NCBI GenBank assembly: GCA_965603825.1
Contig: CBFDEM010000043.1
Span: 372,001-436,000, forward strand
Direction: 5' to 3'
Source of the DNA: Blepharisma stoltei ATCC 30299
Lineage: Eukaryota > Protista > Ciliophora
Length of the DNA: 64,000 nt
A model generated the notes under the pieces. That model saw only the letters and a program-made list of their open reading frames with translations, did no database searches and was not told the origin of the DNA. Shown here in pieces: positions 8,701-50,825 of this stretch (positions within the stretch are counted from its first letter, which is position 1; every line of letters starts with the position of its first letter). A program made the position numbers and the translations under genes.

Positions 8701-9539
8701 GTTTCCAGAAGCTGGCCTTCGACAACTATGAGCTCTTGTCTGAAATTAGATTCTTCAGTCTTAAATTGGTGCCTTCCTAAGAAATTCCTTAAGTTCCTTA
8801 TATCATAAAGCTCTTTTTCTAGCTCAATGTAAGCTAAAGCTTCATTTTTCGGGCCTTCCAAGTGGTCTAGTGCTTTTTGGGCTTCTTCTACTCTAAGTTT
8901 TTGTGCAGTTACTTCATCTGCAATTCCTTCAAGCTCTGTCTCAGCTTGGTCTATCAAAGGCACATACACATTAGTTCCTATGATTTCTTCTAGATACTCA
9001 AGAAGCCCTATTTTGCCTTCTTCCCCAATTGGGGCTTTAGGCTTCATCATAGCAATTTGTTCAACTTCTCCTTGTAAAATTAAAAACCTATTATGTTCTA
9101 AATCAATTCCTCTTAGCTTTAGAACTTGGGTAACTTCTTCGTGGGTGCTTGGGTTACCATCCAATTTATATTGAGAAGAACCATCTTTTGACACTATGCG
9201 TGTCAGAACTAGCCCAGAATTTGGGATGATATCGTATCCATCAGGAGTGTCAAGAATATCTTGGAAGTATACAGAAACCCTTGCAGATTTTAAGTCAGGG
9301 AAACTGTGAGAGTGGTGTATAAGCTCTGAAAGCTTCTTAAGTCTCATTTTTGCAGCTCTTTTCCCGAATGCAAATAAGAGACATTCAAGCAAATTGGATT
9401 TCCCAGAACCATTCGGCCCAACCACGGAGGTGAAGGACTTGTGAAAGGGCCCGATTTCTTTGATTCCTGCATAAGATTTAAAGTTCTCGAGCACAACTTT
9501 ATGAATCATAAGCCTCGGCGGTATTTCTTTATCTTCCAT
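5712..9539 (-). CDS. SMC4: Condensin subunit SMC4
   Basis: NFKSY, Walker A GPNGSGKSN, FLILQGEVEQIAMMKPK, hinge GRLGDLG, LSGGEKTLSSL and DEVDAALD. The two ORFs join in frame by TGA(Trp) at 6642-6644. Confidence 0.96.
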
Positions 9540-9768
9540 TTTATTATCCCTCTTAATCTAAAAATCTATGATTTTCTGTCCCCTAAATCTCCAAACAGCT
9601 TTTTCATGAATAAAATCTGAAAAAATCCTCTGAGTATTATAAATTTATAATCCTTACTAATAAATAAAGTGCCATGATTGTTTGTTTATTATTATCATAA
9701 TAAAATATTTGGAGGGATTTTCAATAAAAAAAGCCAAATTAGCTATAAATAAGTTAATTAACATTAAT

Positions 9769-11970
9769 TTATATATTTACAAGGTTCGTTTCTGCAGGAT
9801 GCCTCACAAGTGGCTCGAAACCTTCTAACACATCAGGAAGACTTTGAGTAAATGAGTCAGCAGCAAATTCCTGCTCGCATTCCCTATACATCGTGTCTCC
9901 TAGCTTAAGTGACGTGATCCCTCTATGCAAATACGAAGATTTCAGCTTTTTCATATCAATCGCCCTGGGTATAAAAAATTCTGCATTTCTAATTCATGGG
10001 TGTTGTAAAGCTTCTTGAGCTGAATAGCGCTGTGAAATATCGCGATTTAGCAATCGAGATATAAAATCTTTACCAGAATGTGTGATTCGCTCCCAAAAAG
10101 TGTCCTCAAAAGTAATTGGTTTGGTTATAGTCAAATTAATTTGAATTTCTTTATCTTTATGTTCAAATGGGAGTTTCCCACGAAGCAAAAGATAAGTAAT
10201 CACACCAATACTTCATATGTCAGCTTTATGATTGTAGCCTTCTTTTTTAAGCACTTCTGGGGCGGAATATCCTAGTGTCCCACATGCTAAATATTGGCTT
10301 TCACCTGGAGACGTCAGCTTGGAAAGCCCAAAATCAGCGACTTTTATTTGTGGGATGTCAGACTTGTCAACTAGCAAGATGTTTTCTGGCTTCAGATCTC
10401 TGTGAATAATTCCAATGTCATGCAGATAAGCAACAACTTCCAAGAGCTGCTTGATTATCCTGCTTGCAGCGTATTCCGAAAACTTATTTTTCATTGAAAT
10501 TCGTTCGTAGAGCTCGCCACCTTTAGCGTTTTCCATTACAATGAGAAGGTGCTTTTTAGTATCGAAAACTTCTTTGAATTTTATTACATTTGGATGATCA
10601 ATAAGCCTCATAATAGCAAGCTCGCTTCTCATAAAATCTCTTTCCTGCTTATTCAGCTTCTTCTTCATGATGACCTTCACAGCAAAAGTTTGGTTCGTTT
10701 TATATTCCGTAGCTAAATAGACATCTGAGAACTTCCCCTTACCAATTCTGTTTTTAAGTTCGTAGTACTCTTTGAATTTCCTGCAGTTCGACGCTTTTTC
10801 AAGTTTCTTAATCCAGTCGTCTCTCTCCGCTTTTGTGTCGCATCAGAGTTTGACTTCTTTGTAGCCAAGGTTTTGGTGACTCAAAGAGACTGCGAACTTA
10901 TTCGTCAAAATATAATCATTTACACTATTTACATAACATCCTTCCATAAATACAACGCCAGAAGGCATGATATCTTCTTCGTTATCTATAAACATAAGTA
11001 AGCTCTTTTTCAGCACAGCATATTTTTTCTCGAAAACATCTTTATCTTCTGGCTTCTTATATACAATTCCTGACATGTCAACAGGCTGCAATGGGTGACT
11101 TTTAGATAGCTGAAAGCCGACATAGCTGCTTCTCTCGTCCAAAGACTTGCTTTTTTGGATGCAAATTTCTGGTATGAAATCATCCTCTCCCCTAACCTTT
11201 ACTGATCAGATTTCTTCTTTGAAAATCACTGAAAATAAGTCGAAAAGTTTGGGATGTTGATAAATGAATTGAGTAAACTCGTCAAAATCAAGCGTTTCCT
11301 TTCCCCCAAATTGGTTCAAAATATGCCTGACCATTGAATGCACCCGAGAAATATAAGTTGGACCGTCTCGGTTGTACGTGAACTCTTTCTTCTTTTTAGT
11401 AACTGAGTTGCTCTTAGCTCTCATAAAAGGGGTTCGGATTTTGATAACCAGGTCTCCTGAGGTAGGGCTCTCGAAAACCCCGTCCTCAGTTGTCGAAATG
11501 TCAGCGATGCTAACAGTTTCTTTCAATGAGCCATGGACCATAGACACGAGTTCAGCTTTGTCAATGAACCCATCTCCTCTTAAATCATACAATTCAAATA
11601 TCAATTTCAACTTGTCTTGGATTGTGCCTTTACTATACCTCCCAATTCCAACGATAAAATCTTCAAAGTCAATTGATCCTCGCTTTAAAGTGTCAAAAAG
11701 TTTAAATAATCTCTCACCTAGCAAGCCCTAAATAAAAAATACAGGCAAAGGGAAAAACTGCAAGAACGCGTCTTTGTCAATTGTCTTTCCTGAGTCACTT
11801 TTTCGAGACAGATCCAAATAAATCTCTTTTAGAATACTTAATTCTTCTTTGGCGACTAAATAAAACTTACATAGTTCAGAAGCACAAAGTAGACGTGAAG
11901 TCACTCGCATTGTATTATCAGTTGTGCTGATAATTGATTTTTCTTTTCTTCTGCTTGAGCAGACGCCCAT
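9769..11970 (-). CDS. EF-hand + PH + Ser/Thr kinase (CDPK7-like), N-terminal MG acylation motif
   Basis: MGVC start at 11970 and intron 11728-11742. EF-hands (DTLKRGSIDFEDF, DLRGDGFIDKAEL), PH-like region, kinase motifs GKGKFS, HRDLKPEN, DFG and APE. TGA=Trp at 11206, 10843, 10213 (ADIW) and 9994 (HPW). Confidence 0.88.
11728..11742 (-). other. 15-nt spliceosomal intron
   Basis: Minus strand GTATTTTTTATTTAG; removal gives the conserved FFPLP|GLLGERLF. Confidence 0.9.
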
Positions 11971-16210: not shown

Positions 16211-19200
16211 TTACAAAAACCAAGGTTTCTGCAATGCAGCAAAATACTTCTCAATTTCAGTTTTCAAAGCCACATTAGGGATCAAGTCATCCATCGTTAT
16301 GCTGATTCCAGTTATTGGATCTTTCCCAGTGAATTGAATAGCTTTAGTTATTGTTTCTTTATCATAGCATGTGTTTGTCTTCCGCACTATAACAGGATTG
16401 TCCATAATCACCCCAGTTATAGGGTCTAATAAATGCTTTGGAGCTCCTTGCTCATTATCATTACTCAGCAGCCCCCTTGTTAATTCTTCAATACTTTTTC
16501 CTGCATGTCTTCTTGTATGTTCTCTTGCCTTAATTTCATACATTGCATAATTATCTCTATACTCCGCTGCAATATTTGCATCTAGTGGGTCTAAAGGTTC
16601 AGGTGTCATAAATAGCCCATAAATACAGTCTAAAATATACCTGGCAGTTGTATCTACTGTATAAAATTGATCTAAGACTGAATGGCATATTCTTCCAGTG
16701 GCGTTTATATTGCAATGGTAAACAGGAGTTATGAATCTCACCTCAGGAGGGGACAAAGGATAGTCTTCACCGAACTTCATATACAGATGAAATAAGCCGC
16801 CTTCATATGGAGTGTGGTCTGGGCCTTTCATAAATATATTTCAAAATGCGGTATCTAACTCGCATGGGTATATACTTGCGCTTGGATGAGGATTCATTGT
16901 GATTGAGTGCAGTTCTTTCATTATACGCTTATATTTTACTGCAGAGTTGCTGGCGTCAAGTCGAGGAGGGGCCACAGAAGCTCGGTGAATAGTTTGACGC
17001 GGGTTCTCAGCTTGTAAAGAAGACTGCTGAGGAGGTTTGATTTTTGGCTGATTCGTAGAGAAATCTTTGCTTTGGAGCTGTGCTAAATCAGTCTCATCTG
17101 ACACAGTAACTCTAGGGTTTGACTGGCGACATCCTACAGACAGAAAAGTTTCTGACTCAAACAATTTGATTCCTTCCTGTATATTTGATGGTAAAAATAC
17201 ATAGCCACCAGTAGAAAAACAAACAGCTTTCAGGTTTTGTGATAGTGCTCCTACTACAACTGCATCCATGGTAATATTATTATACAATAAAGTTTGAGCT
17301 GCTTCCAAGTCAGACTTAGTAGAATAGTTATCCTCTCCATCACTGAGACATAAAATCCTCAAAATCACATCTGGATATTTCTTTTTTATTTCTTTTAGTT
17401 CCTTTGCAGCTTCAAAAATTGCGTCTCACAGTTTAGTTTGACCATCAGCCTGGATACTTTTTGCAGTCCTCGTAAATGTGAGAACGTTTTCTGTAAAGGT
17501 ACAGATTTTGGTAACTTTTGAGTTAAAAAGTACAAGAGAGGTTATATTTTTGAGATTGTAGCCAATTGTACGATCTGCGAAGGACTCAAAGATCTGCTTA
17601 GTAAGATCGAGCCTTGTATAGTCTTCAGTTGAGCTGAATTTAGTATTCATAGACCCACTTGTGTCAAATAAAACAACTATAGCCTCGTCTGGAATTCGCG
17701 TTATGATTTCGTTTCCTTCGTCTTCTCTACGGTGGATTTCAATTGCGCTGGCAAGTTCAGCGACATCAACAATTTCAACGCTGAGATCAAGAATATTCAT
17801 TAAATCGACTTTATTAGGCATCTTAGGGGTCAGTCCACAGTTAATGCAGATGTCCTTTATTTTGTTTCAGGTAATGCAGTGCTTGAATTCTGGAGCCTTG
17901 AGTGATAACGGAGCTACAATTTTAGTCAACTTGTGGTTATTTTTTAGTTCCATTGATTGGATATAGCTAATTCCTCTTGGAAAAGTTTTTCTTACATAGT
18001 CCATTATGCTTATTGACCCGTTATAGTGCCCAGTTCATACTTCGAGAGACTCTTTTTTGTTCAACGCTGCTCTTTTAATTATATACTTAAAATCTGACTC
18101 TTCTTTAATATCACTTTCGTTTACAAGCCCAATTTCAGCGATTTCTTGCCTATCCCTTGCTTTTTGAATTACTGCATTATATTCTAAATAGCAGTATTTC
18201 CCATCATTTTTTCTCAAACAGACTGGCCTTTCTATTTGGACAAAGGAAATCGGACAAATAATGCTGTATACTTCATGACTTTCCAAGCTCTGTAGCTCGG
18301 GCTCATTTTTGCTAGAAATATCACATAAAATTCCCATGATATCTAGAGTCTGCTCTAAAAGCTTATTATCTGGGATCACATTTTTAAACATTTCTTGTAG
18401 AACAATCTTGATTAAAACTATGAAGCCTTCTTCTAATGCTATAGAATCAAGAACACTCATAGAACTATTGCGGCTTAGCTCATATAAAGAATGCAATAAT
18501 GGGGAGCAATTATTAGTAAAGCATCTTATGCATGCTAACAATGCGTCTAGCTTAGCCTTTTCTGGCTTATTTTTGGATAAGCAGTATAAAAACGAATGCA
18601 AAGTCCTTTGTCCTTTAGTTGTTTGCTGGAGTGATTGAACAAGAATTGGCTTATAGGTTGTAGTTTTGTAGTCATAGCTCTCTATTTGATAAGTGAGAAC
18701 TTGATTTTCAATAACCCCAAAAGAGGCAACAAAAGCAGAATCGCTCACTAAATACCTCTCATCAGTTTTAATTTTCAGCTCGAATGGAGGTACCCCTGTA
18801 ATATTAAATAACTTTTGCTTTAGATTTAGAACTGTACATGTAGATAAATCTAATTTAATTGCATATCGTTTATTTTCGTCAGTCACATGCTTGACAAAAA
18901 TTGTAGAATCTCCAATTTCATGATTTAAAGCTGGCTCAATTTTAATATCAAAATAAGGGACTATAAATACACAGATTTTTTCTTTATTTTTTAACACTTC
19001 ACGGCAAGAAACCAAATATAATTGTGATAATGTTCCTACTACAGGATATCCATCCTCTGTATAAATCGCGCAAGTCCAATCAGGACGCATACACAGCTGA
19101 TCTTTTAATATATCATAAGCGAGCTTAGATAATTTTTCATCTTTCTCAATGATGATTTGTCGAGATTGCGAATTTACAGAGTTTAAGACTTTATATAGCA

Positions 19201-19570
19201 AAATCAGTTGATTTTCATTTATTTCTTCTATAATCTTAGCTTCTTCTTGAGTGGCAATTTCTTGAGCTTTAGGAGGTTCTGGGATTTCTTCAAGAGCCAT
19301 CATTTCAGCTTGATTGACGATTTCAACTAAGAGATTGATTTCCTCTTGGTGAGCTGCAATGCCTTTTTGGATTAAAGAAGCATAAGTCCTATCGTCAATT
19401 ATGCGATATAAAGTTCCTTTACGGTCATACATGAAGTAAAATGAATCAGCATTGATTCTGATATGTTCGGATATTAACTGGTTAAGATCTTTAAGAGTTT
19501 CGGGAGCAATAATACAGAGAGGAGGGCTACCTGGAATTGAAATTAGGAGGTCGATGGAAGAGTTTGCCAT
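16211..19570 (-). CDS. Multidomain ubiquitination protein: ubiquitin-like + VWA + E2 (UBC) + U-box, ~1,119 aa
   Basis: Four ORF fragments share one frame, joined by TGA at 18035, 17867, 17426 and 16841. UBL-like (TVLNLKQKLFNITGVPP), VWA MIDAS (DTSGSM, TKLWDAI, LSDGEDN), UBC (GPDHTPYEGG, YHCNINATGRIC) and U-box (LLDPITGVIMDNPV..DPIT..LIPNVALK). Confidence 0.85.
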
Positions 19571-19585
19571 TTTATTAATTGGCTC

Positions 19586-20557
19586 ATGAGAAAGAAATTC
19601 CAGTTTATAGAACAAAAGAAAGGAATATCTAAGACCCAGGGTCTCATATATAAAATCTTTCTAACTACAGCAGGAATTGATGAAACAGCTCTTAATGATT
19701 ATATGGGAAAGAAGCAATGCATTCATTACGAATTAGTTAAAAAGATGCTGGAAAGAGAAAGAGAAGCCAATGACAAACTACTGGCTGAAATAAATTCTAA
19801 AAAATTAGCTGAACGATCAACTCAAACCTCAAATTTTTCTTTTGAAAGATTGAGTATCATGATCACTGATTATGATAAACCCAACGAAAAATACCAAGAT
19901 TGCATCTGTGCAAGACAGTCATCAAGCTTCAACCGAAGTGATATCGCTGAGCAAGAGTTTTCCTCAATGCCTGTCTCTCTTGACTTATCAGACTCTAGCT
20001 CCGACTACTCAGTCTCAAGCCAGTCACAATTTTCATCAAGAAATTCCATTATATTTCCTGATCTCCCTATCAAAACTTTATGTGATGAAAATTTATCCAC
20101 ATCAATCAATTCTCCAGATCTTAAAACTCCTGCGAAGCCTCGCACAAAAGTGCCGCCTCTTCGCATTGATAAAATCCCGCAATACAATCCGTTTGACAAC
20201 CCTGTCTCATTTGAGAGTGGTATGTCAAGTTTATCGTTTTCAAAAAACTCATGATTATTAAGCTCGTTTAATTTTTCAGAGAACAGTTCAGGATTATTTA
20301 ATTTATCGTCATCTCCGAGAACTCCAAAAGCTGATGTAGGCTGCCACATAAATCCAGAACTTCTTGCGTATTATGGAATAAAATCTAACCCTGGCGACGA
20401 TGGAGTCTCAGCACCGACATCTATGTCCTCTTCAAGGTTTTTACACAGTAGAGAATGGTCTAATTGTTCGGGAATTGACGAAGAAAATATAGCTGTGTAT
20501 ATTCCAAGAATTGTACCAGTTGCGTTCTCTGTCATTTCAAATCAATTTCCCAAGTAG
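19586..20557 (+). CDS. Hypothetical Ser-rich protein
   Basis: ORF 19586-20254 extends through TGA to TAG 20555-20557. The true start could be a downstream ATG (e.g. 19702-region MGKK). Confidence 0.6.
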
Positions 20558-21773: not shown

Positions 21774-23669
21774 TTAATTACACCTTGGACTTCTTGACCT
21801 TTCAAAACTTCTTCCTCCACCATTTTCTCCATTTTCCCTTCTTCTACCTCTATTTTCCCCTGGATTTGGGCATTCTCTTGACATATGACCCTCCTGTCCG
21901 CACTTAAAGCAGCCCTTGTTTCCAACATTTTTAGTGCTTGGATTAGTGCATTCTTTAGACATGTGTCCAGATTCTCCGCATTTGTAGCAAGCTCTGTCTC
22001 CTCCTGATTTTGCTGGGTTTGTGCATTCTTTTGACATGTGTCCAGTTTCCCCACATTTATAGCAGGCTCTATCACCTCCTGATTTTGATGGATTTGGGCA
22101 TTCTTTAGACATGTGTCCAGTTTCTCCACATTTGAAGCATTCTCTACCTTTTGGTTTTTCTTCGCCTTCTTCACCTTCTTCTGGGGCTTCTCCTTTGGGT
22201 TTTCTCATCATTCTTCTAAGTTCCCTTGGGACATTTTGTTGAGCCTCTTCTAAGACCTGTATCAAATTTTGTGCACATTTAGCATTATCTTTTGTAAAAA
22301 AAGAAATGGCAGTTCCTTTAGAAGTCCCTCTTGCAGTCCTTCCAATCCTATGAACATAATCTTCAATTCTTTTAGGGAAATCATAGCAAATCACATAGTC
22401 AAGATCTTTAACATCAAGTCCTCTGCTGGCCAGATCTGTCGCAATAACAATAAAATTTCTCCCAGCCCTGAAATCAAGAAGTGTAGTCATCCTATCTTTC
22501 ATTGACTTATCGCCATGAAGTGTAGCTGATTTTATTTCTTTTGATTCCAGCTCAGAGGAGAGAATTTCGCATTGAGCTTTTGTATCGACAAATATTAAGA
22601 TACGCTTTTCAGTCAGAGGCTTCACAATTTCAACGAGTTTGTCCATTTTTTCTTCTGAGTCAACGATATTTATGACTTGTGTGATGTTGTGGTTCGCAGT
22701 AACTCCTCCTTCTTTGCCAATGTGGATTTCGATTGGGTCTTTCATGAATTCTTTGGAAAGCTCCTCAAGAGTGTTTGGCCATGTGGCAGAGCATGCTATT
22801 ATTTGACGATCAGGACGGGCTTGGCTTAGAATTTTTCTGAGTTGAGGAGCAAAGCCCATGTCAAGCATTCTGTCGCCTTCATCTACCACAATGTAGCTGG
22901 TTCGCTTAAGATTGATAGCGCCGCACTCTAGGAAATCGAGAAGTCGTCCGGGAGTGGCAACGACAAGCTGGGGAAGAACTTCTAAGTCTTTCATTTGGAA
23001 TTGTCTTCCGTTACCACCGTAAAGACAGACACTGCGGATTTCAAGGCATTTGCCGAATCGGTTAGCTTCAAAGATAATTTGCTTAGCAAGTTCGCGGGTT
23101 GGAGCGAGAATAAGAGCAATTGGGCCTTGACCTGGTTGAATTGGCTGTTGGTTAGTTATGTGGATTAAGGCTGGAAGTACGTAGCTAAGTGTTTTTCCAC
23201 TACCTGTGCAGGCTATACCAATTATATCTTTTCCACCAAGGGCAGAAGGCAGCATTAAAGACTGTATAGGAGTTGGCTGAATAAACTTGGAAGCTTCAAA
23301 CAGTGCTGTAATTGCTTCTGGAAAACCAAATTCTGCAAACGAGATTATAGGCTTTATCTCACTGCCTTTAACCACTGAAGCATTCTGTGTAAAGAAGTTA
23401 TTGATATCTTCAAGTGAAAGAGTTGATTCAAAAGCCTTTGAGACAACTGGAATGAGAGTTTCTGAGTTCCAATCTATTTGTTGAAGCTTTTCTCCTAAGG
23501 TCTCATAGTTAAGAGGAGGAAGTTGAGGTTTAGCATTAGGGTCTTGGTTTTCGTTATTCTCGGTTGCTGTTACTTCTGGGATAGATGGCTTTGCAAAGCT
23601 GTCTCCCCATCCGCCACTAGTAGCAGTTGATCCCCAAGATGGAGCGTTGTCAAATGTAGTTGCTGACAT
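21774..23669 (-). CDS. DEAD-box RNA helicase (Dbp2/p68-like core) with four C-terminal CCHC zinc knuckles
   Basis: PTPIQ, TGSGKT, PTRELA, TPGRL, DEGD, SAT, RGLD and HRIGRTAR; four CX2CX4HX4C motifs. Confidence 0.93.
   Translation of the reverse strand: MSATTFDNAPSWGSTATSGGWGDSFAKPSIPEVTATENNENQDPNAKPQLPPLNYETLGEKLQQIDWNSETLIPVVSKAFESTLSLEDINNFFTQNASVVKGSEIKPIISFAEFGFPEAITALFEASKFIQPTPIQSLMLPSALGGKDIIGIACTGSGKTLSYVLPALIHITNQQPIQPGQGPIALILAPTRELAKQIIFEANRFGKCLEIRSVCLYGGNGRQFQMKDLEVLPQLVVATPGRLLDFLECGAINLKRTSYIVVDEGDRMLDMGFAPQLRKILSQARPDRQIIACSATWPNTLEELSKEFMKDPIEIHIGKEGGVTANHNITQVINIVDSEEKMDKLVEIVKPLTEKRILIFVDTKAQCEILSSELESKEIKSATLHGDKSMKDRMTTLLDFRAGRNFIVIATDLASRGLDVKDLDYVICYDFPKRIEDYVHRIGRTARGTSKGTAISFFTKDNAKCAQNLIQVLEEAQQNVPRELRRMMRKPKGEAPEEGEEGEEKPKGRECFKCGETGHMSKECPNPSKSGGDRACYKCGETGHMSKECTNPAKSGGDRACYKCGESGHMSKECTNPSTKNVGNKGCFKCGQEGHMSRECPNPGENRGRRRENGENGGGRSFERSRSPRCN
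21870..22140 (-). repeat. Tandem ~75-bp repeats encoding the zinc knuckles
   Basis: Units GCATTCTT..GACAT(G/A)TG recur near 21870, 21948, 22023 and 22098; the last three are near-identical (25-aa period). Confidence 0.85.
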
Positions 23670-23913
23670 TGTTTTATAAAGGAAAATAGCCCCCGCTATT
23701 TATAGTTGCAAAAAATAAGAGTTTAGCTCTTAAGCTGAAATTATTCCCTCTTTTAATTTTTATAAGGAACTAGAAAATGGTGGAGGCTTTAAAACACAAT
23801 AAAATTTATCAGCAATATTCTTTTACTTGCCAATCTGATACTAATTAATTTTAGTTATGCAAATTAAGCATGCTCACTATTAATGACTAAATTTGAAGAT
23901 AATTTTAATATTT

Positions 23914-32145: not shown

Positions 32146-35100
32146 ATGGAAGAGGAAGAAGAAATAAAAACCAAAACTGAAAGCGAAGACGCCACAGGTA
32201 TAAAGTTAAGACCGCTAACTAAATACGAAGAAGATATGATGCTAAGAGCTAGAATCAAACACAAACAAAATATCACCCACGAACAAAAATGCTGGGGCAA
32301 AACGTTTCAAGGATCCGCTTTCATTCCAAAGCCAGAAAAAATCCTTTTCGAAGATTTTGAAGTTGGCCAAACCTATACTCAAACAGTCATACTCACAAAT
32401 GTTTCTTTTACATTCAACTCTTTTAAACTTCTGCCTTTAGACCCAGAAATCAAAGACTTTTTCAATATAGTTTTTACTCCTCCAGGCCGAATGTCAGCTG
32501 GGTTGACATGTCCTATTCAAATAACCTTCACCCCACAGATAAACTCAGACATAATTTCAGTTTTCCCAATCTTAAGTGAAACTGGCAGAATTGACATCCC
32601 TTTAGAATGTTTAAGCAAGAAAAGTGTAATTTCAGTCCAAAGCAATATTATTGATTTCGGTCAAGTCATTCTAGGTGAGCACTGCAATAGAACACTTGTA
32701 ATAAAAAACGAAGGTGCGTTGGGTAGTGAATTTTCATTATTAGATAAAGATGGAGAAGCCATTCCTGTAGTTGCTGATCAAACAATGCTAGTAACTCAAG
32801 AATCTTCTATTTCACAAAGCCAAATTCTTGAAAGCTCGCCAACTTACGAAGAAGTCAATCCAGAAAGCTTATTTTCTATGCTAAAATTCCCGAGATCTGG
32901 GAAAGTTGATGGATACTCCACAACGACGATTCCATTTAAATTTTCACCTGCAGACATAGGAGTTTATGAAGATACCATTATGATTGTATTCAAAAACAAA
33001 AAAACAAGTCCAATCATATTGACTGTGAGAGGAGAATGCATTGACGTCCCTATTTATGTAGAGCAAGAAGTATATGATTTCAAAGTTTGTGTATTAAATC
33101 ATACGTATCGTGAAAAAATTGTTCTTAGGAACAGAAGTGTGAATCCTATGAAAATTCAATTGACATTTCCAAAAGACGCTAAAGAGCATTTTGAATTTAG
33201 CCCTACCTTAGGATATATACAAGGATCAGATAAATTTGATATATGGGTTAAATTTAGACCTGATAATAATGCATATACAATGCTAGCTGCTTTTCAAGAA
33301 GCTCCTAATGCTTTTAATATCCCCATCAAAGTTACAGGAGCCAACCAAGTAATGCCAGTACCTTTTTCAATTCATGTAGAACTAACAAGTGATCTCATTA
33401 CAGTTGAGCCACCTTTATTGGATTTCGGTGATGTCTATGTACAAACTGCAGTAAGTATGAAATTTATTATGAAAAGCCACAGCGCGTTACCTCAAGAGTA
33501 TGCATTCGTTCGCTTGCCACAAACAATCTCAATACAGCCTTTTGATGGGTTTGGAACTTTACTTCCATTTGAAGAGCTCCAAATGACTGCCATTTATAGG
33601 CCAGCTCCTGTAAAAGCTGGGACTGAGCTTGGAAAAGATGCAAATGACTTCTACATAAGAGCTAAAACAGGCGACTTAACAGCAAGAGAGTTCAAAGTCT
33701 CATACTCCGCTAAACTTCAGTCCTGCCCAATTGCATTTTCTGCTTACAAAATTGATTTCCCAGGCCTCCCAGTAGGAGAGATGTCAGAATATATGATTTC
33801 TGTTACTAATTCATCCAGAAAACTACCATATGCAATTGAAATTATCCCTCCTCCAATAGATGTTGCTGGCCTGAAAATCACTCCTACTGTGATTCCAAGG
33901 CTTGCAACTGGGGATATGGGCAGAATTCTTATTAGATTTGATTCAGATTTTAGAGACCTTCAAAAGCGGGAAGATGCAGAAGAGTGGAATTTGGAAAAAG
34001 AGCTGTATAATATAGGAGGAAAAGTCTATGATTTTTATGTGGATGAGCCTGCTAAAAGAAGCCAGCATTATGAGTGGCTCATTCCTGTATATTTTAGGCC
34101 ACTTCTTCCTGATGGAGTGACTCGGCTGCATTATTTGCAGATGAAGACTGTTGTAATAAACAAAACACTGATCGCAGACCCAGAAGTGTTAGATTTTGGA
34201 GAAATTGCTGTTTCTTGCAGAAAAGTGGCAGAGTTTACGCTGCTTAATCAAGATACGCAGCCAGTCTCTTTATCAATGGATCCGCTTCCTCCATTTGGAG
34301 GGTTTACAGTCTTAAATGCTATGAGAGTAGTAGAGTCTGGCCAAAAGAAAGCAATAGTAGTTGAATTCGAGCCAATCAACCAGCAATATTTTGAGGAAAA
34401 ATTGACAATCAGGACTGGAAACTCTGCAGTCTCTATAGTGCTTAAAGGCAGAGGTGTCAGGCCAGAGCTCAAGCTCGACCCAGAAGATGGTTTGCTCAAT
34501 ATGGGAAATGCAATACCTGGTGATTTTGTCGAAAAAGCTTTTACTCTAAAAAATATCGTATCATTCCCATTTGAATTCATGCTCAAGAAGAGAATGGTTG
34601 GCGTACAAAATTATAACAGCTTAGTTAATTTTACGTTTATTCCACAGTATGGGAGAATAGAGCCAGGAAGCAGTTTGCAGGTCAAAGTTAAATTTAACCC
34701 TGACCACTCTTCAGAAAGGTATTATGAACATATCCTTATTGATGTTCCAAATCAAATTGATCCAAAAGAAATTTATTTGGCTGGAAGTTGTTGGAGGAGA
34801 TCTATGTATGTCAAGTACGATAAGCCATTTAGATGGCCTTCGTCCCAAGAATTAATAGAAGAGGAAAAAGAAGGCGCTTTAAACTTTTTGCAAAAATCAG
34901 CTGATAAGCCGCCAAGATTTGTCTTGACCTTTGTTAAAGATGCTCCTGGTCTTAGTCAAGAACTGCAGGAGCAAACCAGGCAAAGAAAAATAGTAGTTGG
35001 AAACTGCAAACTAAATAACTCAAAAAATGATAAGGCAGGGTCGTTTGAAATACTTATGCCAAAAGTGGATAATAATCTGTTTACATGTGATGTGGTAAAA

Positions 35101-35316
35101 GGAAATACTCCACCTGGCGCCGAACAAAAAATCACCTTTACTTTTAATCCGCCACCTCCCGATCCATTACTTAACGAGTTAGTAGTTCTAAGGGGAATTG
35201 GCCAATGGGTCGAAATCTTAGTAGAAGGTAGGATTTTAGGAGGATTCCTCCCGCCAGGCATTCCAGAAAGCAGTCCTTTTGAAGTGCTATTAAGAGGCTA
35301 CGTTCAGCAAATTTAA
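32146..35316 (+). CDS. CFAP74: Cilia central-pair protein CFAP74-like (tandem ASH/Ig-like domains)
   Basis: WGKTFQGSAFIPKP..ILFEDFEVGQTY..LTNVS and PPGRMSAGLTC; repeated (I/L)DFG..N ASH modules. Confidence 0.78.
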   Translation: MEEEEEIKTKTESEDATGIKLRPLTKYEEDMMLRARIKHKQNITHEQKCWGKTFQGSAFIPKPEKILFEDFEVGQTYTQTVILTNVSFTFNSFKLLPLDPEIKDFFNIVFTPPGRMSAGLTCPIQITFTPQINSDIISVFPILSETGRIDIPLECLSKKSVISVQSNIIDFGQVILGEHCNRTLVIKNEGALGSEFSLLDKDGEAIPVVADQTMLVTQESSISQSQILESSPTYEEVNPESLFSMLKFPRSGKVDGYSTTTIPFKFSPADIGVYEDTIMIVFKNKKTSPIILTVRGECIDVPIYVEQEVYDFKVCVLNHTYREKIVLRNRSVNPMKIQLTFPKDAKEHFEFSPTLGYIQGSDKFDIWVKFRPDNNAYTMLAAFQEAPNAFNIPIKVTGANQVMPVPFSIHVELTSDLITVEPPLLDFGDVYVQTAVSMKFIMKSHSALPQEYAFVRLPQTISIQPFDGFGTLLPFEELQMTAIYRPAPVKAGTELGKDANDFYIRAKTGDLTAREFKVSYSAKLQSCPIAFSAYKIDFPGLPVGEMSEYMISVTNSSRKLPYAIEIIPPPIDVAGLKITPTVIPRLATGDMGRILIRFDSDFRDLQKREDAEEWNLEKELYNIGGKVYDFYVDEPAKRSQHYEWLIPVYFRPLLPDGVTRLHYLQMKTVVINKTLIADPEVLDFGEIAVSCRKVAEFTLLNQDTQPVSLSMDPLPPFGGFTVLNAMRVVESGQKKAIVVEFEPINQQYFEEKLTIRTGNSAVSIVLKGRGVRPELKLDPEDGLLNMGNAIPGDFVEKAFTLKNIVSFPFEFMLKKRMVGVQNYNSLVNFTFIPQYGRIEPGSSLQVKVKFNPDHSSERYYEHILIDVPNQIDPKEIYLAGSCWRRSMYVKYDKPFRWPSSQELIEEEKEGALNFLQKSADKPPRFVLTFVKDAPGLSQELQEQTRQRKIVVGNCKLNNSKNDKAGSFEILMPKVDNNLFTCDVVKGNTPPGAEQKITFTFNPPPPDPLLNELVVLRGIGQWVEILVEGRILGGFLPPGIPESSPFEVLLRGYVQQI

Positions 35317-44801: not shown

Positions 44802-45421
44802 ATCAGGAATTAATTCAATTCATATTGGAAATATGGATATAGTTTATTATGAATCAAATTAGAAATAAACTATTTTTGGAATAAAATAGCTTTCTTTTTC
44901 ATTATTTTTCGATGCCAATTAGACGACCATTAGGAAGTGATTTTATTAATTATCTACTATTTCAAATTAACAATATTTAAAGCTTAAAAATAGAACGTAT
45001 TATATAATTTTTAATATTCCATTTTATTTTTATAGTTCATTTAGATTATAATCTGCACTTGTTATCATTTAATTTAACAAATCACTTAAAAATCTGCACA
45101 GTTTAAAATTTAGGAATTTGAATTAAAAAATTAATATTTAATTAGATAAACTTGCGTTATTTATATTAAGTTCTTATTAAAAAATCAAAAATAAAGATAT
45201 ATGATTACTATTCAGCACATCAGAATTTAATTAAAATTAGAAATTATGCGATGATATTTATTTAAGCAATATAATGAGATCATTTAAGATCATGATGGAG
45301 AGAAAAATATCCATTTTATAATAGGCACAGCACAATAACTCAAAAATGAAATTCTTTATTAAAGTTTTGCATTTTTTCACTCAATCTTATAATCCTATTA
45401 ATAGAAGCTCTATATATCAAA

Positions 45422-48400
45422 ATGTGGGTGAGCTATTCATATGACGTAGGAAGTCTCAGCTCAGGCTCTGATTTATTCGGCTTTGAAATTCCAGAAAAAT
45501 CTGTTACTGATAATAAAATTTCATATGTAGATCTTTGAAACCTTTTATTAGAATACCAAGCATTTGTAAATTCAAGTACAACTATAAGTTACTATGATGA
45601 AGAAATAGGCGCATATAAAAATTTTTCATCAAAAGACAAACTCTCAACTGAAAGAGAAATTCAACTTCTCATCCAAAAATCACAAATTAGTGAAATTGGC
45701 ACTCTAGTAGAACGAATAGAAGACTTAGAAACCAATATTTCGCACCTTAAATCTATTTTAAAAGAAACTGACCAATTAAAACCTGTAAATCAAAACCAAG
45801 CAAGCTCAGAGCATCTTGACATGGCAATGCTATATGCAGCTCCTCTGACAAGGAAAGATGGGATCAAAGTAAAAGAATGCGATAATTGGAATTTAAATTT
45901 TGACTTGGAAAGGAAAAAATTATTGGAAGCTTTTGAAAGAAGCCAAATCCATGCATCAATTAGATTTGAAACAGCAACTTTGCAGCATTTAGGGGAAATA
46001 CTGGAGCTGCAACCCAAAATACTTCATATAAGCTGTCATGGGTATTATCAAAGGACTTTTCCTAATGAATTTGTGCTGGCTTTTGAAGACAGTAAATATT
46101 TAGGAATGAGGGATGAAGTCAATCAAAGTCGGCTTAAGAAAATTCTTGAGACCCATTGCAAGTATTTTAATATCGTCATCGTAAGTGCTTGCTTCTCACA
46201 AGCTATCGGGAACGTATTTCTAGATGCCGGAATTGACTGTGTAATTACAATTCACGACCAATGCAAAATTTTAGACGACGCTGCTATTTCTTTCGCAGTC
46301 ACATTTTATAGAAGTCTGCTCCGAGGAAAATCAATAAAAAACGCTTTTATTGAAGCCAAGAAAAATGTCAATTTTGAACAAGCTGTTATGAGAACAACTT
46401 GTTGCTGTGCCCACAACCATAAGCGCCAGTGTCTCTGAAAAGCCAGAAACGACCATGGAGAGCATACAATAAATGAAGAATGCACCTGTGAAAAACGAAA
46501 TAATGACTCAGTCCATAAGCTAAACTGTCAATGGGCGACCAAATTTCTTGCAAAATTCAATAAAACAAGGACTCCAAGTGAGCAAGAAATCAAAGATGGA
46601 AGCTGAGTAATTTGTTGCTGCTCACCAGAAGTCCCACATAATGAAGCAATGAAATTCAAATTACTGCTGAAAAACAAAGAAGTTGGGAATCAAATTCTCT
46701 TCTCTGAGCGCACACAAAATGAAATCCAGGAGCCTTATACATATGAAACTCCTTTTAAGCCACCTCCAATAAGGCAGAAAATCATAGGAAGAAACAGAGA
46801 AATGCAGCAGCTTTTAGAAATGGGCAAAAACAATAGAGTTATAATAGTAAGTGGGAAACTTGGCATTGGGAAATCTCTTCTGGTAAAAAGTGTTGCTCAT
46901 TATGCTTGTGAGAGAAGAATTTTCAAGCATGGAGTGCTTTATTTAAATCTCCAAGGCAAAACCAATTCAAGCACAATTAATCAAATGATAGCCAAAAGCT
47001 TAAACGTCCCTTGAGAAAAAAGCAAAGAAGAAATTGCAAGAATAATTGAAAACATGCATCTTTTAATAATCCTTGACAATATTGGTGGAATTATTGCTCA
47101 CAATAAAGAAAAAGTAAAAAATAAAATTGTTTCACTGCTTGAAAGGACACAGTTTCCTAAGTTTTGAATTGTCGTGAGTGGCGAGAATACTTTAAAGCTG
47201 GATAGAGCTGCAGAATTCAAGCTTGGAGAACTAAGTAAAAGAGCTGCAGCTAAGCTAATTAAAACGAGGACAGAAGTTTACCAGAAAATCAGGAATGATG
47301 TCCTGAAGCTTTTAAACGTTGTCTGCAAGTCTCCTTCTGAGCTGTTTCAAGTAATGCCTGTACTTATGGAAAAAACAGTTGATGAATTTTTACTTGACTA
47401 TCAGTCTCATCATTCTAGCCTTAATGAATATGAAGATTCTCGCTCCCTTTATTTATCACTTACTTATCTTCAAAACCGCAAGCCAGAAGCTGTCAATCTT
47501 ATCAAGCTACTGTCATTACTACCTGTAGGGATTTTTAGAGAAAATCTTAACCTTATATGCAGCAAACAAGTCTGTGACTGAAAAGACGCACTTTCACTTT
47601 TAGAGTCACAAGAAGGGGAAGAATGACTTGTAAAAATCCATTTGAATGACCATGATAATAACTCAGATGATAGCGAGGATGAAGAAAGCCAAGAGCTGCG
47701 CTCAAGCACGTTTCTGGATATGAATGAAAGCTTAAATATAATGGAAATTGAGCAATTGACGAGTCAAGAAATTCTGATGGTTTCTCAGCCTGTTAAAAAA
47801 TATATTAAATCTGAAGTCAGCCCGTTGGCTGATAATGCAATTGCTTGCATAGAGTATTTGGCTGCTTTGGCTAGAGCTCTAATGCAAATTATTAGCCAGC
47901 TGCCTTCTATGGCCTGCTCAAATGTGATGAAATCCCTTGGAAATTTCAACGCTTTAAATCCTTCACCAACCTGAAAGCTCTGTAACTACGAAGAAATTGT
48001 TGCAGAAATATTGAGCACTATAAAAAATTCAATAATTCCTCCCCAGAAGTTATTTGAATGCATGGAGCGCAATTTTGCAGACTACCTCAGTGAAAATTAT
48101 TTAAGGCAGATTTTTAATGACCGTAGAGATTCGCAAATTGGAAACCTTGTTTTCGAAATGGGGCAATGCGTGATGTGCATATACCTCCTCTTTGGGAAGA
48201 AAAACCAAGCATTTAATGTTATAGATAACATGAAAAAATGTCTTAAAACCTTCAGCGCCAATGAAACACTCAAGCATAAATTGAGGCTCTCCTGAAGTGC
48301 TATGAAAATTGAATATAAAAAGAAGTTCAGAATCGAAAAAGCTATAAAACAAGCTGAAAAAGCTTTGCAGCACTTTGAAATTAATGAAATGACTGATTGC

Positions 48401-50530
48401 TTGGCTGAAAGCTATTTATTAAGGGCAATTATTTCTATAAATGCACCTCTTAAGCGCAAAGAAATGTATGAGAATAGAGTAAATGAAATAAATGAAAACT
48501 TAGAACAGGCAGTAAGCCGTTTTAAAGATTTATGGTTCAGCATAGGAAGCTCAGGACTTGCACGATCTTATTTACTTTATTGTGAATGAAAAATTTCTAA
48601 TAACCATAGTGATGAAGAAATAATCAGAAGACTGCAAACCTCTTATAAAATATTCAAAGAACTGAATCTAATTGGCCTAGAAGAAAAATCTCTTTGTTTA
48701 TTGGGAAAAGCTTATTTTAACATGGAAAGATTAATTGCAGCAGAAGAGTCTTGAAGATTTGCATTAGAAATCGCACGGAAATTCAAAGACAGGAGCTATG
48801 AAGTCCAAATCAATGAGCAGCTAAATTTGATTTTTGAGCGCATAAGAAGACGCAGTGGAAATGTAATTGTGGTATTGAGAGCTTATCCTTTGGTATCAAT
48901 TAACTCTACTACTGGAAATTTTATTTTGGATTCTGTGGTGTGCACTCATTTTTCTACTTTCAAAAGAAACCTTCTTGATACTTTGTATCAACAACGAAAA
49001 CTGATTTATATGAAATTTGATGTTGGGACAAGACAAAAACTTATGGAGTATATAAAAGAAGGCTGCAAAGTACTACACCTCTCGACCTGCATGCCGCAAA
49101 GGGACTCTTTGGTATTAGAAAACAACAATTTTAGCGCTGATAATGTTTCTTTGCTAGAACTAGAAGAATTATTTGGCCCAGCCTCAGAGAGATGTGGATT
49201 GAGTCTAGTTGTATTAGCCATGCCTTTTTCTAAAAAAATTGGTGAGTATCTATTTAACCAAATCGGTATAGATTTTGTGATATGTTTCGATTATAAAGAA
49301 TATCCCCTCTGCAAATACTTAACACAGCTTCAGCTTATGTTTGAAAAAGCTATAGAAACATTTTGTGAAAAATTTTATGCGCTAATAGTAGAAGGGAAGA
49401 CTGTAAAAAAGGCATGAAAAGCAGCAAAGCGTGTCAGTGACGAATTTGTTGATTCTAATTCAAAACTTTTTGAACATTTTAATCATGAAGACTTCAATAT
49501 TGAAGAATTGTATAAAGGAAAAGGACCTATTTTACTAGGAAAAGGAGATAAGCCGTTGTTTAGTGACTCGTCAAGTGATATTCTTTCACATGAATCTGTC
49601 CTATTTCCTGGCAATGTGTTGCATACTTCAATACAAGGACAATATGTAAATATCAAAAGAACAAATAGCAGCCTAGTTGGAAGGCATAGGGCGATGTTCG
49701 AAGTCATAGAAAAACTGCTTGCAACGAGACTTGTCCATATTGTAGGACCAAAAGGGATTGGCAGAAGCTCTTTGATAAAGCATATAGGATATTATATGCA
49801 TACAAGGCAAAAATTTCCTGATGGAATATTTTGGATTAATATGAGATCCCAAGGGAGCTTGGCACAATTTAATGAAAATTTGGAAAAAGAAGGCTTATTC
49901 ATATCATTTGAGGATCGTGATATGGAGGAAAACCTTAGCCATAAAAGTTTGCTTTTAATGCTTGATGATTGTGATGATATTATTAGAGAAGCCAGGGCTC
50001 AGTTTCATAACTTAATTGAGACTTTGCATCGCAAATATAAAATTAGCGTAATAATTACAAGCTTTCCAATTGAGCTTGGATATCCTTGTGAGAGATATGA
50101 ACTTAATCCTCTTGAGCCTTTAGAATCAGCTTCAATGCTTCTGGCGTGCTTAGACAGAAGCCTAGATCGCAAAGAAGTAATTCCTTATAATAAAGATATG
50201 AATATTGCTCAAGATCTAGCTGAATCATCACTTCTGAAAGAATGCATGAATTTGCCGCTAAAAATAAAAGAACTTGCTTGTAAATTAAGCCAGGAGAATT
50301 TTAAAGTTCTTGAATTCAAAAGAATTCAAATAAGTGACTCCTCTGATTCACTTCCTTCAATTGTATCAACTATGACTGAAGCAAACGATTTAAGATGGTC
50401 AGACGAAGAAATATTTGAAGAAGAAAAAGAGACCAAAGGAGAAAGCAAAGAGCAAAAAACAAGAGATTATTCATTAAAAATGAAAAGAAAAAATACTGAT
50501 ATCGAGAAAAATCAAAAATCCAAACTTTAA
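45422..50530 (+). CDS. ~1,702-aa CHAT protease - STAND NTPase - TPR - pseudo-CHAT - STAND NTPase protein
   Basis: Eight ORF fragments share one frame and are separated only by TGA (about 12). CHAT1 ILHISCHG/VIVSACFS; NTPase1 IIGRNREM, GKLGIGKS, LLIILDN; TPR-like helices; CHAT2 VLHLSTC/VVLAMP; NTPase2 LVGR, GPKGIGRS, LLLMLDDCD. Confidence 0.85.
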
Positions 50531-50825
50531 TTATACAAGTTAATGAAATTAATATTTATTTAAACTGACAGATTTATATATTTAAATTTAAATAATGTAT
50601 AAGTAAATTAAATAAGCTACTGACAAATAATGAAGTTAGATTTTAATTAAAACCATTTTCTGATACAAATCAAGCTTTATGCTTGTATAATTAAAGTAAG
50701 AGATACTCAGTAAATATATTATTATAGCATCATAATTAAATTTCTGTTTATCATTTTAAAAATTTTACTGAACAATTTACGGTCAAATCTTTAAGAATTT
50801 AAATGTTTATTAAAATAAAAACACA

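Follow-up and report, generated by a model that had tools for sequence, protein, structure and literature searches.

In a 64-kb window of the genome of the heterotrich ciliate Blepharisma stoltei ATCC 30299 (the whole 64,000-nucleotide stretch of contig CBFDEM010000043.1 that was analyzed here), we characterized a single intronless nuclear gene at 45422-50530 whose 1,702-amino acid (aa) product carries two protease-NTPase units in tandem. In the first unit, a CHAT protease domain of the caspase fold (CHAT1), with an intact His/Cys dyad and a Cys/His-rich insertion, is followed by a STAND NTPase (NTPase 1) and a TPR-like helical array; in the second, a CHAT domain lacking the catalytic residues (pseudo-CHAT) is followed by another STAND NTPase (NTPase 2). 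Animals, plants, fungi, and bacteria all rely on fusions of STAND NTPases with death effectors as central players in immunity and cell death, and to our knowledge protists are almost blank for such fusions. The data described below define a conserved protist family with a tandem protease-NTPase unit, a copy that was inactivated anciently and kept, an insertion with 16 Cys and His residues, and a possible polymerizing head. On balance, we lean toward a conserved switch for regulated proteolysis or cell fate as its role.

The coding sequence is one forward-strand frame of 1,702 sense codons with a TAA stop at 50528-50530. The frame contains 12 in-frame stops, all of them TGA (aa 39, 339, 395, 531, 582, 720, 735, 851, 958, 1056, 1111, and 1332), and is free of TAA and TAG from 45275 through 50527; by our own arithmetic, the chance of such a run in random sequence is ~1e-40 (at ~34% GC, ~5% of random codons are TAA or TAG). 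The first-pass annotation had joined eight open reading frame (ORF) fragments into one frame of about 1,702 aa broken only by TGA. This frame was confirmed, though the TGA codons in fact split it into 13 pieces, of which eight are start-to-stop ORFs of 94-340 aa.

Comparisons with related genes point to the meaning of these codons. Eleven of the 12 TGA codons align with TGG or TGA in both B. stoltei paralogs, and relatives whose proteins were called with a genetic code that treats TGA as a stop carry Trp at aa 339 (15 of 21) and aa 851 (18 of 21). The other TGA columns in those relatives are mostly aromatic or hydrophobic, and Gly is the majority residue in none. Throughout the window, genes end in TAA or TAG and have scattered TGA codons inside. 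Based on the paralog alignment, the Trp columns, and these gene ends, the gene is read with TGA as Trp. A bacterial origin, or the use of code 25 (TGA as Gly), was ruled out by the eukaryotic neighboring genes and by the Trp or aromatic TGA columns in relatives. There were no tRNA or Rfam matches in the 64-kb window.

Translated with TGA as Trp, the frame is identical, letter for letter, to the public 1,702-aa protein P0001, which public annotation already lists as one protein. The earlier description of the gene as hidden, and as one that annotation would miss, was therefore mistaken. The gene is real, nuclear, and already annotated, given its identity to P0001, the reading of TGA as Trp, and its eukaryotic and ciliary neighbors. 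It is correctly called in the public annotation, yet the name is automatic and uninformative; the paralogs are named "unnamed protein product [Blepharisma stoltei]" at NCBI and "AAA+ ATPase domain-containing protein" in UniRef. For the searches reported here, the window DNA was scanned as pieces between TGA codons, and P0001 was used for full-length searches.

The gene is probably transcribed. Four sequencing runs of one study, of a type guessed to be RNA, contain the stretch, and their contigs cover 45408-50517, essentially the ORF alone. Individual contigs of 4,822 and 4,753 bases span nearly the entire ORF, the contigs of all four runs are free of joints, insertions, and deletions, and depth is zero in all four runs in the flanking bins (45100-45293 and 50532-50725). 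Transcriptome coverage stops at ORF ends and genomic DNA coverage would not. Given that the coverage ends with the ORF and that there are no joints, we read the contigs as one unspliced mRNA.

The contigs differ from the window sequence at 29 places, 21 of them at third codon positions and 21 synonymous. These differences (runs X2-X4, between 45679 and 50328) are clustered in blocks, such as the one at 47173, 47179, and 47182, and look like allelic or strain haplotypes, not errors.

The first-pass annotation had placed six parts in this gene (an N-terminal domain with a coiled coil, a CHAT domain, a STAND-type NTPase, a helical or TPR-like region, a second CHAT domain, and a second NTPase) and had proposed translation with TGA as Trp followed by Pfam, profile, and AlphaFold analysis. 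That analysis recovered CHAT, NACHT/NB-ARC, and TPR; all six parts are supported by profile, fold, or profile-profile tests, and the motifs that had been quoted (LHISCHG, VSAC, GRxxE, GKLGIGKS, and hhhhDN) are all present. The parts and their coordinates are given in the table.

Table. Features of the B. stoltei tandem protease-NTPase gene. Positions are those of the 64-kb window; AF2, AlphaFold2; pLDDT, predicted local distance difference test; pTM, predicted template modeling score; pN, proportion of nonsynonymous differences.
Feature	Position	Strand	Basis
Whole coding sequence, 1,702 codons	45422..50530	+	12 TGA (Trp), TAA stop; no intron detected
N-terminal β-grasp domain, aa 1-88, DIX/SOSEKI-like by fold only	45422..45685	+	AF2 pLDDT mostly >90
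Long single helix, aa 91-117, candidate coiled coil	45692..45772	+	AF2 model; profile
CHAT protease core (caspase fold), aa 128-325	45803..46396	+	Pfam, PDB profile, fold
Cys/His-rich insertion, aa 326-410, 10 Cys and 6 His	46397..46651	+	Conservation; AF2 pLDDT ~90
Closing strand and helix of the CHAT fold, aa 411-433	46652..46720	+	AF2: strand 412-416, helix 419-423
STAND NTPase 1 and helical/winged-helix region, aa 450-720	46769..47581	+	NACHT PF05729
All-helical array, aa 768-1150	47723..48871	+	AF2 pLDDT 84.6, pTM 0.81; helix pairs
Pseudo-CHAT, aa 1155-1345, CHAT fold without catalytic His/Cys	48884..49456	+	Profile-profile
STAND NTPase 2, aa 1411-1650	49652..50371	+	NB-ARC PF00931
C-terminal tail, charged, low-complexity, poorly conserved, aa 1651-1702	50372..50527	+	Highest pN of all parts

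CHAT1 matches the Pfam CHAT family (PF12770; cut-off 24) with scores of 51.6 bits for the window piece and 52.2 bits for P0001, and has a PDB profile match to 8tl0 (E 1.1e-17). In an AlphaFold2 model of aa 1-450 (67-sequence alignment, pLDDT 87.4), the domain resembles the filament-forming SAVED-CHAT protease of 8tl0 (Foldseek E 4e-9, VIA Z 22.8), with Csx29/TPR-CHAT, DdvA, separase, metacaspases, legumain, and caspases as the next fold matches. The catalytic dyad is intact, with His206 (46037-46039) in the motif LHISCHG (aa 201-207) and Cys257 (46190-46192) in VSAC (aa 254-257), which gives the His206-Gly207 and Ala256-Cys257 pairs. Of 67 relatives, 55 retain the whole dyad. By these features, CHAT1 is predicted to be an active-looking cysteine protease.

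The protease core is interrupted by an 85-residue insertion with the pattern CCCxHxH..C..H..H..CxC..H..C...CCC..H, which is a signature of the family. Each of its 16 Cys and His positions is kept in at least 61 of the 67 relatives, exceeding the conservation of the catalytic dyad. Sixteen ligands are enough for four zinc sites, and the pattern suggests that the insertion probably binds zinc; no Pfam family, Atlas lead, or significant PDB-profile match was found for it. The module is followed by the conserved strand KFKLL (411-416), in which K411 and F412 are nearly invariant. Since fold alignments to CHAT structures span aa 128-433 and this strand comes after the module, the insertion sits inside the protease domain.

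N-terminal to the protease, the predicted β-grasp domain aligned with the SOSEKI polymerizing domain (Z 9.8 over 83 residues, root-mean-square deviation (rmsd) 2.8) and with the DIX domains of Dvl2 (Z 8.9) and Ccd1 (Z 8.2); overall, SOSEKI and DIX domains can be superposed on the predicted fold of aa 1-89 across 73-83 residues (rmsd 2.2-2.8). With the SOSEKI, DIX, and PB1 domains, which are β-grasp domains that polymerize head to tail, the Blepharisma N-terminus shares no sequence similarity; β-grasp folds are common, and polymerization here would follow by fold analogy. No significant Pfam, PDB-profile, or Atlas-feature match was found for this domain, and we therefore take DIX/SOSEKI as a resemblance, not a membership. 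For the helix that follows, profile matches were confined to peptides of the coiled-coil type, GCN4 variants among them (E ~1e-3), a result that composition may drive.

NTPase 1 is recognized by the Pfam NACHT model at 38.8 bits when read through two TGA codons (cut-off 26.7), at 47.6 bits on P0001, and at 40.1 bits on an unbroken piece of a paralog; Pfam does not separate NACHT from NB-ARC for the NTPases of this protein. The motif GRNRE (aa 456-460) precedes an intact Walker A, GKLGIGKS (aa 478-485, 46853-46876), and an intact Walker B, LIILDN (aa 548-553), of the form hhhhDN. The Walker A Lys is present in 24 of 24 aligned proteins.

A disordered acidic linker (aa ~732-767) leads into the helical array. 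The best 21 Foldseek matches of the array model are all LGN/Pins TPR domains, and Rap and the STAND-TPR protein PH0952 are matched as well, with the structural matches covering about 245-300 of the 430 model residues. A profile of the family matches consensus TPR (5e-17), TTC29 (2.6e-7), and RapI (7e-7), in each case through the C-terminal half of the array, while single-sequence Pfam TPR matches fall below the cut-off. Together, the model and the family profile identify the predicted array as TPR repeats. The array follows NTPase 1, and no repeat array follows NTPase 2. No LRR family was found in any Pfam scan.

The second unit is homologous to the first. In alignments of family profiles, the pseudo-CHAT matched CHAT1 over 173 columns (hhalign 99.7%, E 2.4e-25; 93% when three sequences were used), and a pseudo-CHAT hidden Markov model (HMM) matches CHAT1 in every family member. 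As for CHAT1, 8tl0 is the best PDB match (E 0.003). Neither catalytic residue, His or Cys, is present in any of 25 aligned proteins (the product of this gene and 24 full-length relatives), and the domain is under purifying selection. NTPase 2 in turn is homologous to NTPase 1 (hhalign 97%, E 2.3e-11) and matches NB-ARC at 29.6 bits on the window piece (cut-off 23.5) and 47.4 bits on P0001. Its Walker B (LMLDD) is intact, and its Walker A reads GPKGIGRS (49745-49768), in which Arg (AGA, 49763-49765) takes the place of Lys. Of 24 aligned proteins, 22 have Lys here, both Blepharisma paralogs among them, and Arg is found only here and in one distant relative; no variant of the AGA codon was reported in the four runs. 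The first-pass annotation had called this second unit decayed, which is right for the protease dyad but not for the unit as a whole, given a pseudo-CHAT under selection and NTPase 2 motifs kept in 22 of 24 proteins. No significant Pfam, PDB-profile, or Atlas-feature match was found for the C-terminal tail.

An active and an inactive caspase-fold domain are also kept together in separase and in c-FLIP/caspase-8. The CHAT1 structural matches include separase chains (Z 12-12.7) and the protease-like domain of c-FLIP (Z 9.0). Unlike those systems, the two CHAT domains of the Blepharisma protein are ~800 residues apart, with an NTPase and the TPR array between them.

The family is broader than the window's gene. 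Among 1.84 billion cluster representatives, the CHAT1 profile found 3,632 proteins at E <=1e-3 and 41 at E <1e-30, many of these being proteins of 1,600-1,700 residues with two CHAT stretches. BLASTP relatives are collinear over nearly their full length at 27-40% identity. With domain HMMs that we built, applied to fetched proteins of at least 600 residues, the full seven-part order was recovered in 28 cluster representatives, and shorter forms of ~770 aa with CHAT, the Cys/His module, and an NTPase are also common. The first-pass annotation had suggested counting paralogs across ciliate genomes; the count came to three loci in this genome, plus relatives in Stentor and Nonionella stella. Few members carry a species name. 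In Stentor coeruleus, SteCoe_35861 (P0005) is the sole named Stentor member, and its relatives include seven-part layouts. A 2,333-aa protein of the foraminifer N. stella from EukProt (P0021) carries two CHAT-like domains, each followed by an NTPase, with the CCCxHxH module between the first CHAT and its NTPase; neither a β-grasp nor a TPR part was recognized by the domain models. Because of this protein, the family extends beyond ciliates into Rhizaria. Contigs bearing other relatives encode eukaryotic or ciliary proteins as well: Cullin, CFAP97, Arf, a Miro-type GTPase, and HAUS5 on one, and Rap-GAP and RING proteins on another.

SteCoe_35861, encoded on a 12.8-kb contig, is 1,114 aa long and ends after the TPR array. 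Both units are present in the relatives closest to it, and the gene may have been truncated in the Stentor model.

A search of 185,579 prokaryotic species genomes with the conserved motifs of the family recovered no relative, its 21 pattern matches all being unrelated. In a word-indexed search, the next-best matches after the family were bacterial STAND/TPR proteins, at 124 bits or less compared with more than 800 for family members. In a FastTree phylogeny, the three Blepharisma copies group together (support 100), with the Stentor-containing clade as their sister at modest support (81). From this tree and the absence of the pseudo-CHAT dyad in all 25 aligned proteins, we date both the tandem duplication and the inactivation of the second protease far back, and the duplications that gave the Blepharisma copies to recent times. 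The tree also contains a monophyletic subfamily (support 99) of six full-length proteins, P0041, P0023, P0026, P0013, P0024, and P0015, that have lost the dyad of CHAT1 as well. In five of the six, His is replaced by Gln, with Cys also lost in most, and P0041 keeps His and has Asn instead of Cys. The losses do not extend to the 16-Cys/His module or the NTPase motifs, which are retained in all six. As judged from these substitutions, the protease is probably not the output in this clade.

In the paper library searched, we found no paper linking CHAT domains with ciliates, or STAND NTPases and CHAT with ciliates, in line with the first-pass annotation, which knew of no characterized ciliate system of this type. 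Four features were found to be undescribed: an active unit and a pseudo-unit conserved in tandem, the 16-Cys/His protease insertion, the DIX-like head, and the protist distribution.

Within the genome (a 41.46-Mb, 64-contig assembly), the Pfam CHAT model detects three loci. The paralog on contig 16 has 1,705 codons with 6 TGA and is 79% identical, the paralog on contig 27 has 1,705 codons with 8 TGA and is 51% identical, and both are collinear end to end with the window's gene. Between the window's gene and the contig-16 copy, the pairwise ratio of nonsynonymous to synonymous substitution rates (dN/dS), calculated with dS near saturation, is 0.066 overall, and is 0.024 for CHAT1, 0.057 for NTPase 1, 0.057 for the helical/TPR region, and 0.083 for NTPase 2. 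CHAT1 also has the lowest pN of all parts (0.055). The three genes hold all five NB-ARC matches and five of the 11 NACHT matches of the genome. With these matches concentrated in three genes, Blepharisma does not have an expanded STAND repertoire.

The known behavior of STAND NTPases and caspase-fold proteases suggests how the protein could work. The TPR array would hold the NTPase module or modules in a closed, off state until a ligand or partner binds. Binding would then lead to nucleotide exchange and oligomerization, possibly with additional self-association by the N-terminal β-grasp domain and helix, and clustering in the oligomer would activate the CHAT protease to cleave downstream targets. 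The pseudo-CHAT and NTPase 2 half is old and selectively maintained, not debris, and would be a regulatory partner. The gene structure, the domains, their conservation, and probable transcription come directly from the analyses above. Zinc binding, oligomerization, protease activation, and the biological role are all properties that we infer for this protein.

Such a scheme resembles apoptosome and NLR logic, in which induced oligomerization activates a caspase-fold protease. Like Apaf-1/CED-4, animal NLRs, and plant NB-ARC proteins, the Blepharisma protein has P-loop STAND NTPases that score above the Pfam NACHT and NB-ARC cut-offs, and it joins an N-terminal effector or adaptor to a repeat sensor. 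It differs in having the protease fused in the same chain instead of recruited through death-fold domains, in having TPR repeats instead of LRR or WD40, in its two NTPase modules per chain, and in the lack of CARD, PYD, and TIR domains. Given the small size of the family in this genome, the conserved orthologs, and a dN/dS that is low even in the TPR region, we favor, by a modest preference, a conserved switch for regulated proteolysis or cell fate, with apoptosome-like or separase-like logic, over a diversifying pathogen-receptor repertoire engaged in an arms race.

Several observations weigh against such a protease switch. Lys-to-Arg substitution in Walker A is a standard experimental loss-of-function mutation of P-loop NTPases, so the second switch, with its Arg, may not cycle. 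The monophyletic subfamily lacking the CHAT1 dyad means that the output cannot be proteolysis in every member. The DIX-like assignment is a match of folds at Z 9-10. With dS near saturation between paralogs, positive selection at a few sites could escape a pairwise dN/dS, and contigs from runs guessed to be RNA cannot prove a single transcript. A complex prediction for CHAT1 plus the insertion with the pseudo-CHAT, run without the family alignments, scored 0.00 and is evidence neither for nor against a contact between them.

A more far-reaching form of the proteolysis or cell-fate switch can be put forward tentatively, and we regard it as somewhat doubtful. This family, undescribed so far and found among SAR protists in heterotrich ciliates and in one or more foraminifers, could be a self-contained, two-tier death or fate switch, in which a zinc-cluster CHAT and its dead twin, each with its own STAND NTPase in one chain, assemble through a DIX-like polymerizing head. 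If so, an apoptosome- or inflammasome-like machine would have arisen independently of those of animals, plants, and fungi, and it might control events in the life of giant single cells such as wound responses or programmed death of nuclei. RNA interference (RNAi) is among the approaches described for Stentor in PMC4019465. With RNAi in use there, function is directly testable in Stentor, and such a test would show how ciliates run regulated proteolysis and cell-fate decisions.

The first-pass annotation had proposed a ligand-sensing, oligomerizing protease switch, a mechanism that the architecture makes plausible, as a candidate for innate immunity or programmed (nuclear) death. In an innate-immune sensor, the TPR array would recognize a pathogen-derived molecule of bacterial, viral, or symbiont origin, and the CHAT protease would trigger host-cell death or a defense response. 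The order of effector, STAND NTPase, and repeats is that of NLRs and bacterial STAND defense proteins, and the closest solved CHAT structures, SAVED-CHAT and Csx29, are bacterial defense proteases. The nearest ESM Atlas structural clusters are bacterial CHAT domains fused to NB-ARC/NACHT, WD40, or FGE-sulfatase domains, and PADLOC gave weak matches to mad8, PDC-S01, and SAVED_CHAT. Bacterial CHAT-STAND-TPR proteins are likewise fusions of CHAT, repeats, and an NTPase. With bacterial CHAT-STAND, SAVED-CHAT, and Csx29 (the TPR-CHAT of type III-E CRISPR), the Blepharisma protein shares the CHAT fold and dyad, fusion to a NACHT/NB-ARC module and repeats, and the partnership with TPR. However, it is encoded by a eukaryotic nuclear gene, has the 16-Cys/His insertion inside CHAT, has a β-grasp N-terminus and a tandem second unit with a dead protease, and has no close prokaryotic relative among those searched, the PADLOC matches being weak.

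The NLR/Avs-like label that went with that proposal holds for the effector-STAND-TPR layout but not beyond it: the Avs models of PADLOC-DB, a prokaryotic antiviral group, gave no match for this eukaryotic protein, and a protein that lacks LRR is not an NLR in the strict sense. A sensor in conflict with pathogens is also at odds with just three copies and no lineage-specific expansion, with strong purifying selection that extends to the TPR region (0.057; dN/dS overall is ~0.07), and with an architecture that stays collinear at 27-40% identity across distant relatives. We consider an immune role unlikely, and do not favor it for three conserved copies.

A non-proteolytic role is also conceivable, in which the protein would be a scaffold or two-tier NTPase machine with CHAT domains serving as binding modules in the manner of pseudo-caspases, particularly in the subfamily without the dyad. 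Every aligned relative has one dead CHAT copy, a whole subfamily has lost the CHAT1 dyad, and the Cys/His module and NTPase motifs are better conserved than the dyad. For the Blepharisma protein itself, however, such a role appears distinctly improbable: the Blepharisma/Stentor clade keeps the dyad and the flanking HG and SAC motifs, as do most relatives for both catalytic residues (55 of 67), and CHAT1 is the part with the lowest pN and a dN/dS of 0.024. That the gene is a pseudogene, a fusion of adjacent genes through real stops, or bacterial contamination can be dismissed almost entirely, for while 12 in-frame TGA codons break the frame under the standard code and CHAT-STAND-TPR proteins are commonest in bacteria, the TGA codons align with Trp in paralogs and in relatives from TGA-stop codes, variants are mostly synonymous with a dN/dS of 0.066, single contigs span nearly the whole ORF, the neighboring genes are eukaryotic or ciliary, and the motif search of 185,579 prokaryotic species genomes recovered no relative.

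The neighboring genes in the window encode a PP2C, CFAP74, an ankyrin-SAM protein, an XPG/FEN1-like nuclease, a NIF phosphatase, and a DEAD-box helicase with zinc knuckles. The CFAP74-like ciliary protein (32146-35316, forward strand; 1,056 aa) has multiple Ig-like/ASH domains and confirms the eukaryotic context. The DEAD-box helicase (21777-23699, reverse strand) carries four C-terminal CCHC zinc knuckles, a Vasa-like layout. Other long frames on the reverse strand also contain in-frame TGA: 1,149 codons with 4 TGA at 16211-19660, 1,281 codons with 1 TGA at 5712-9557, and 652 codons with 4 TGA at 9769-11727.

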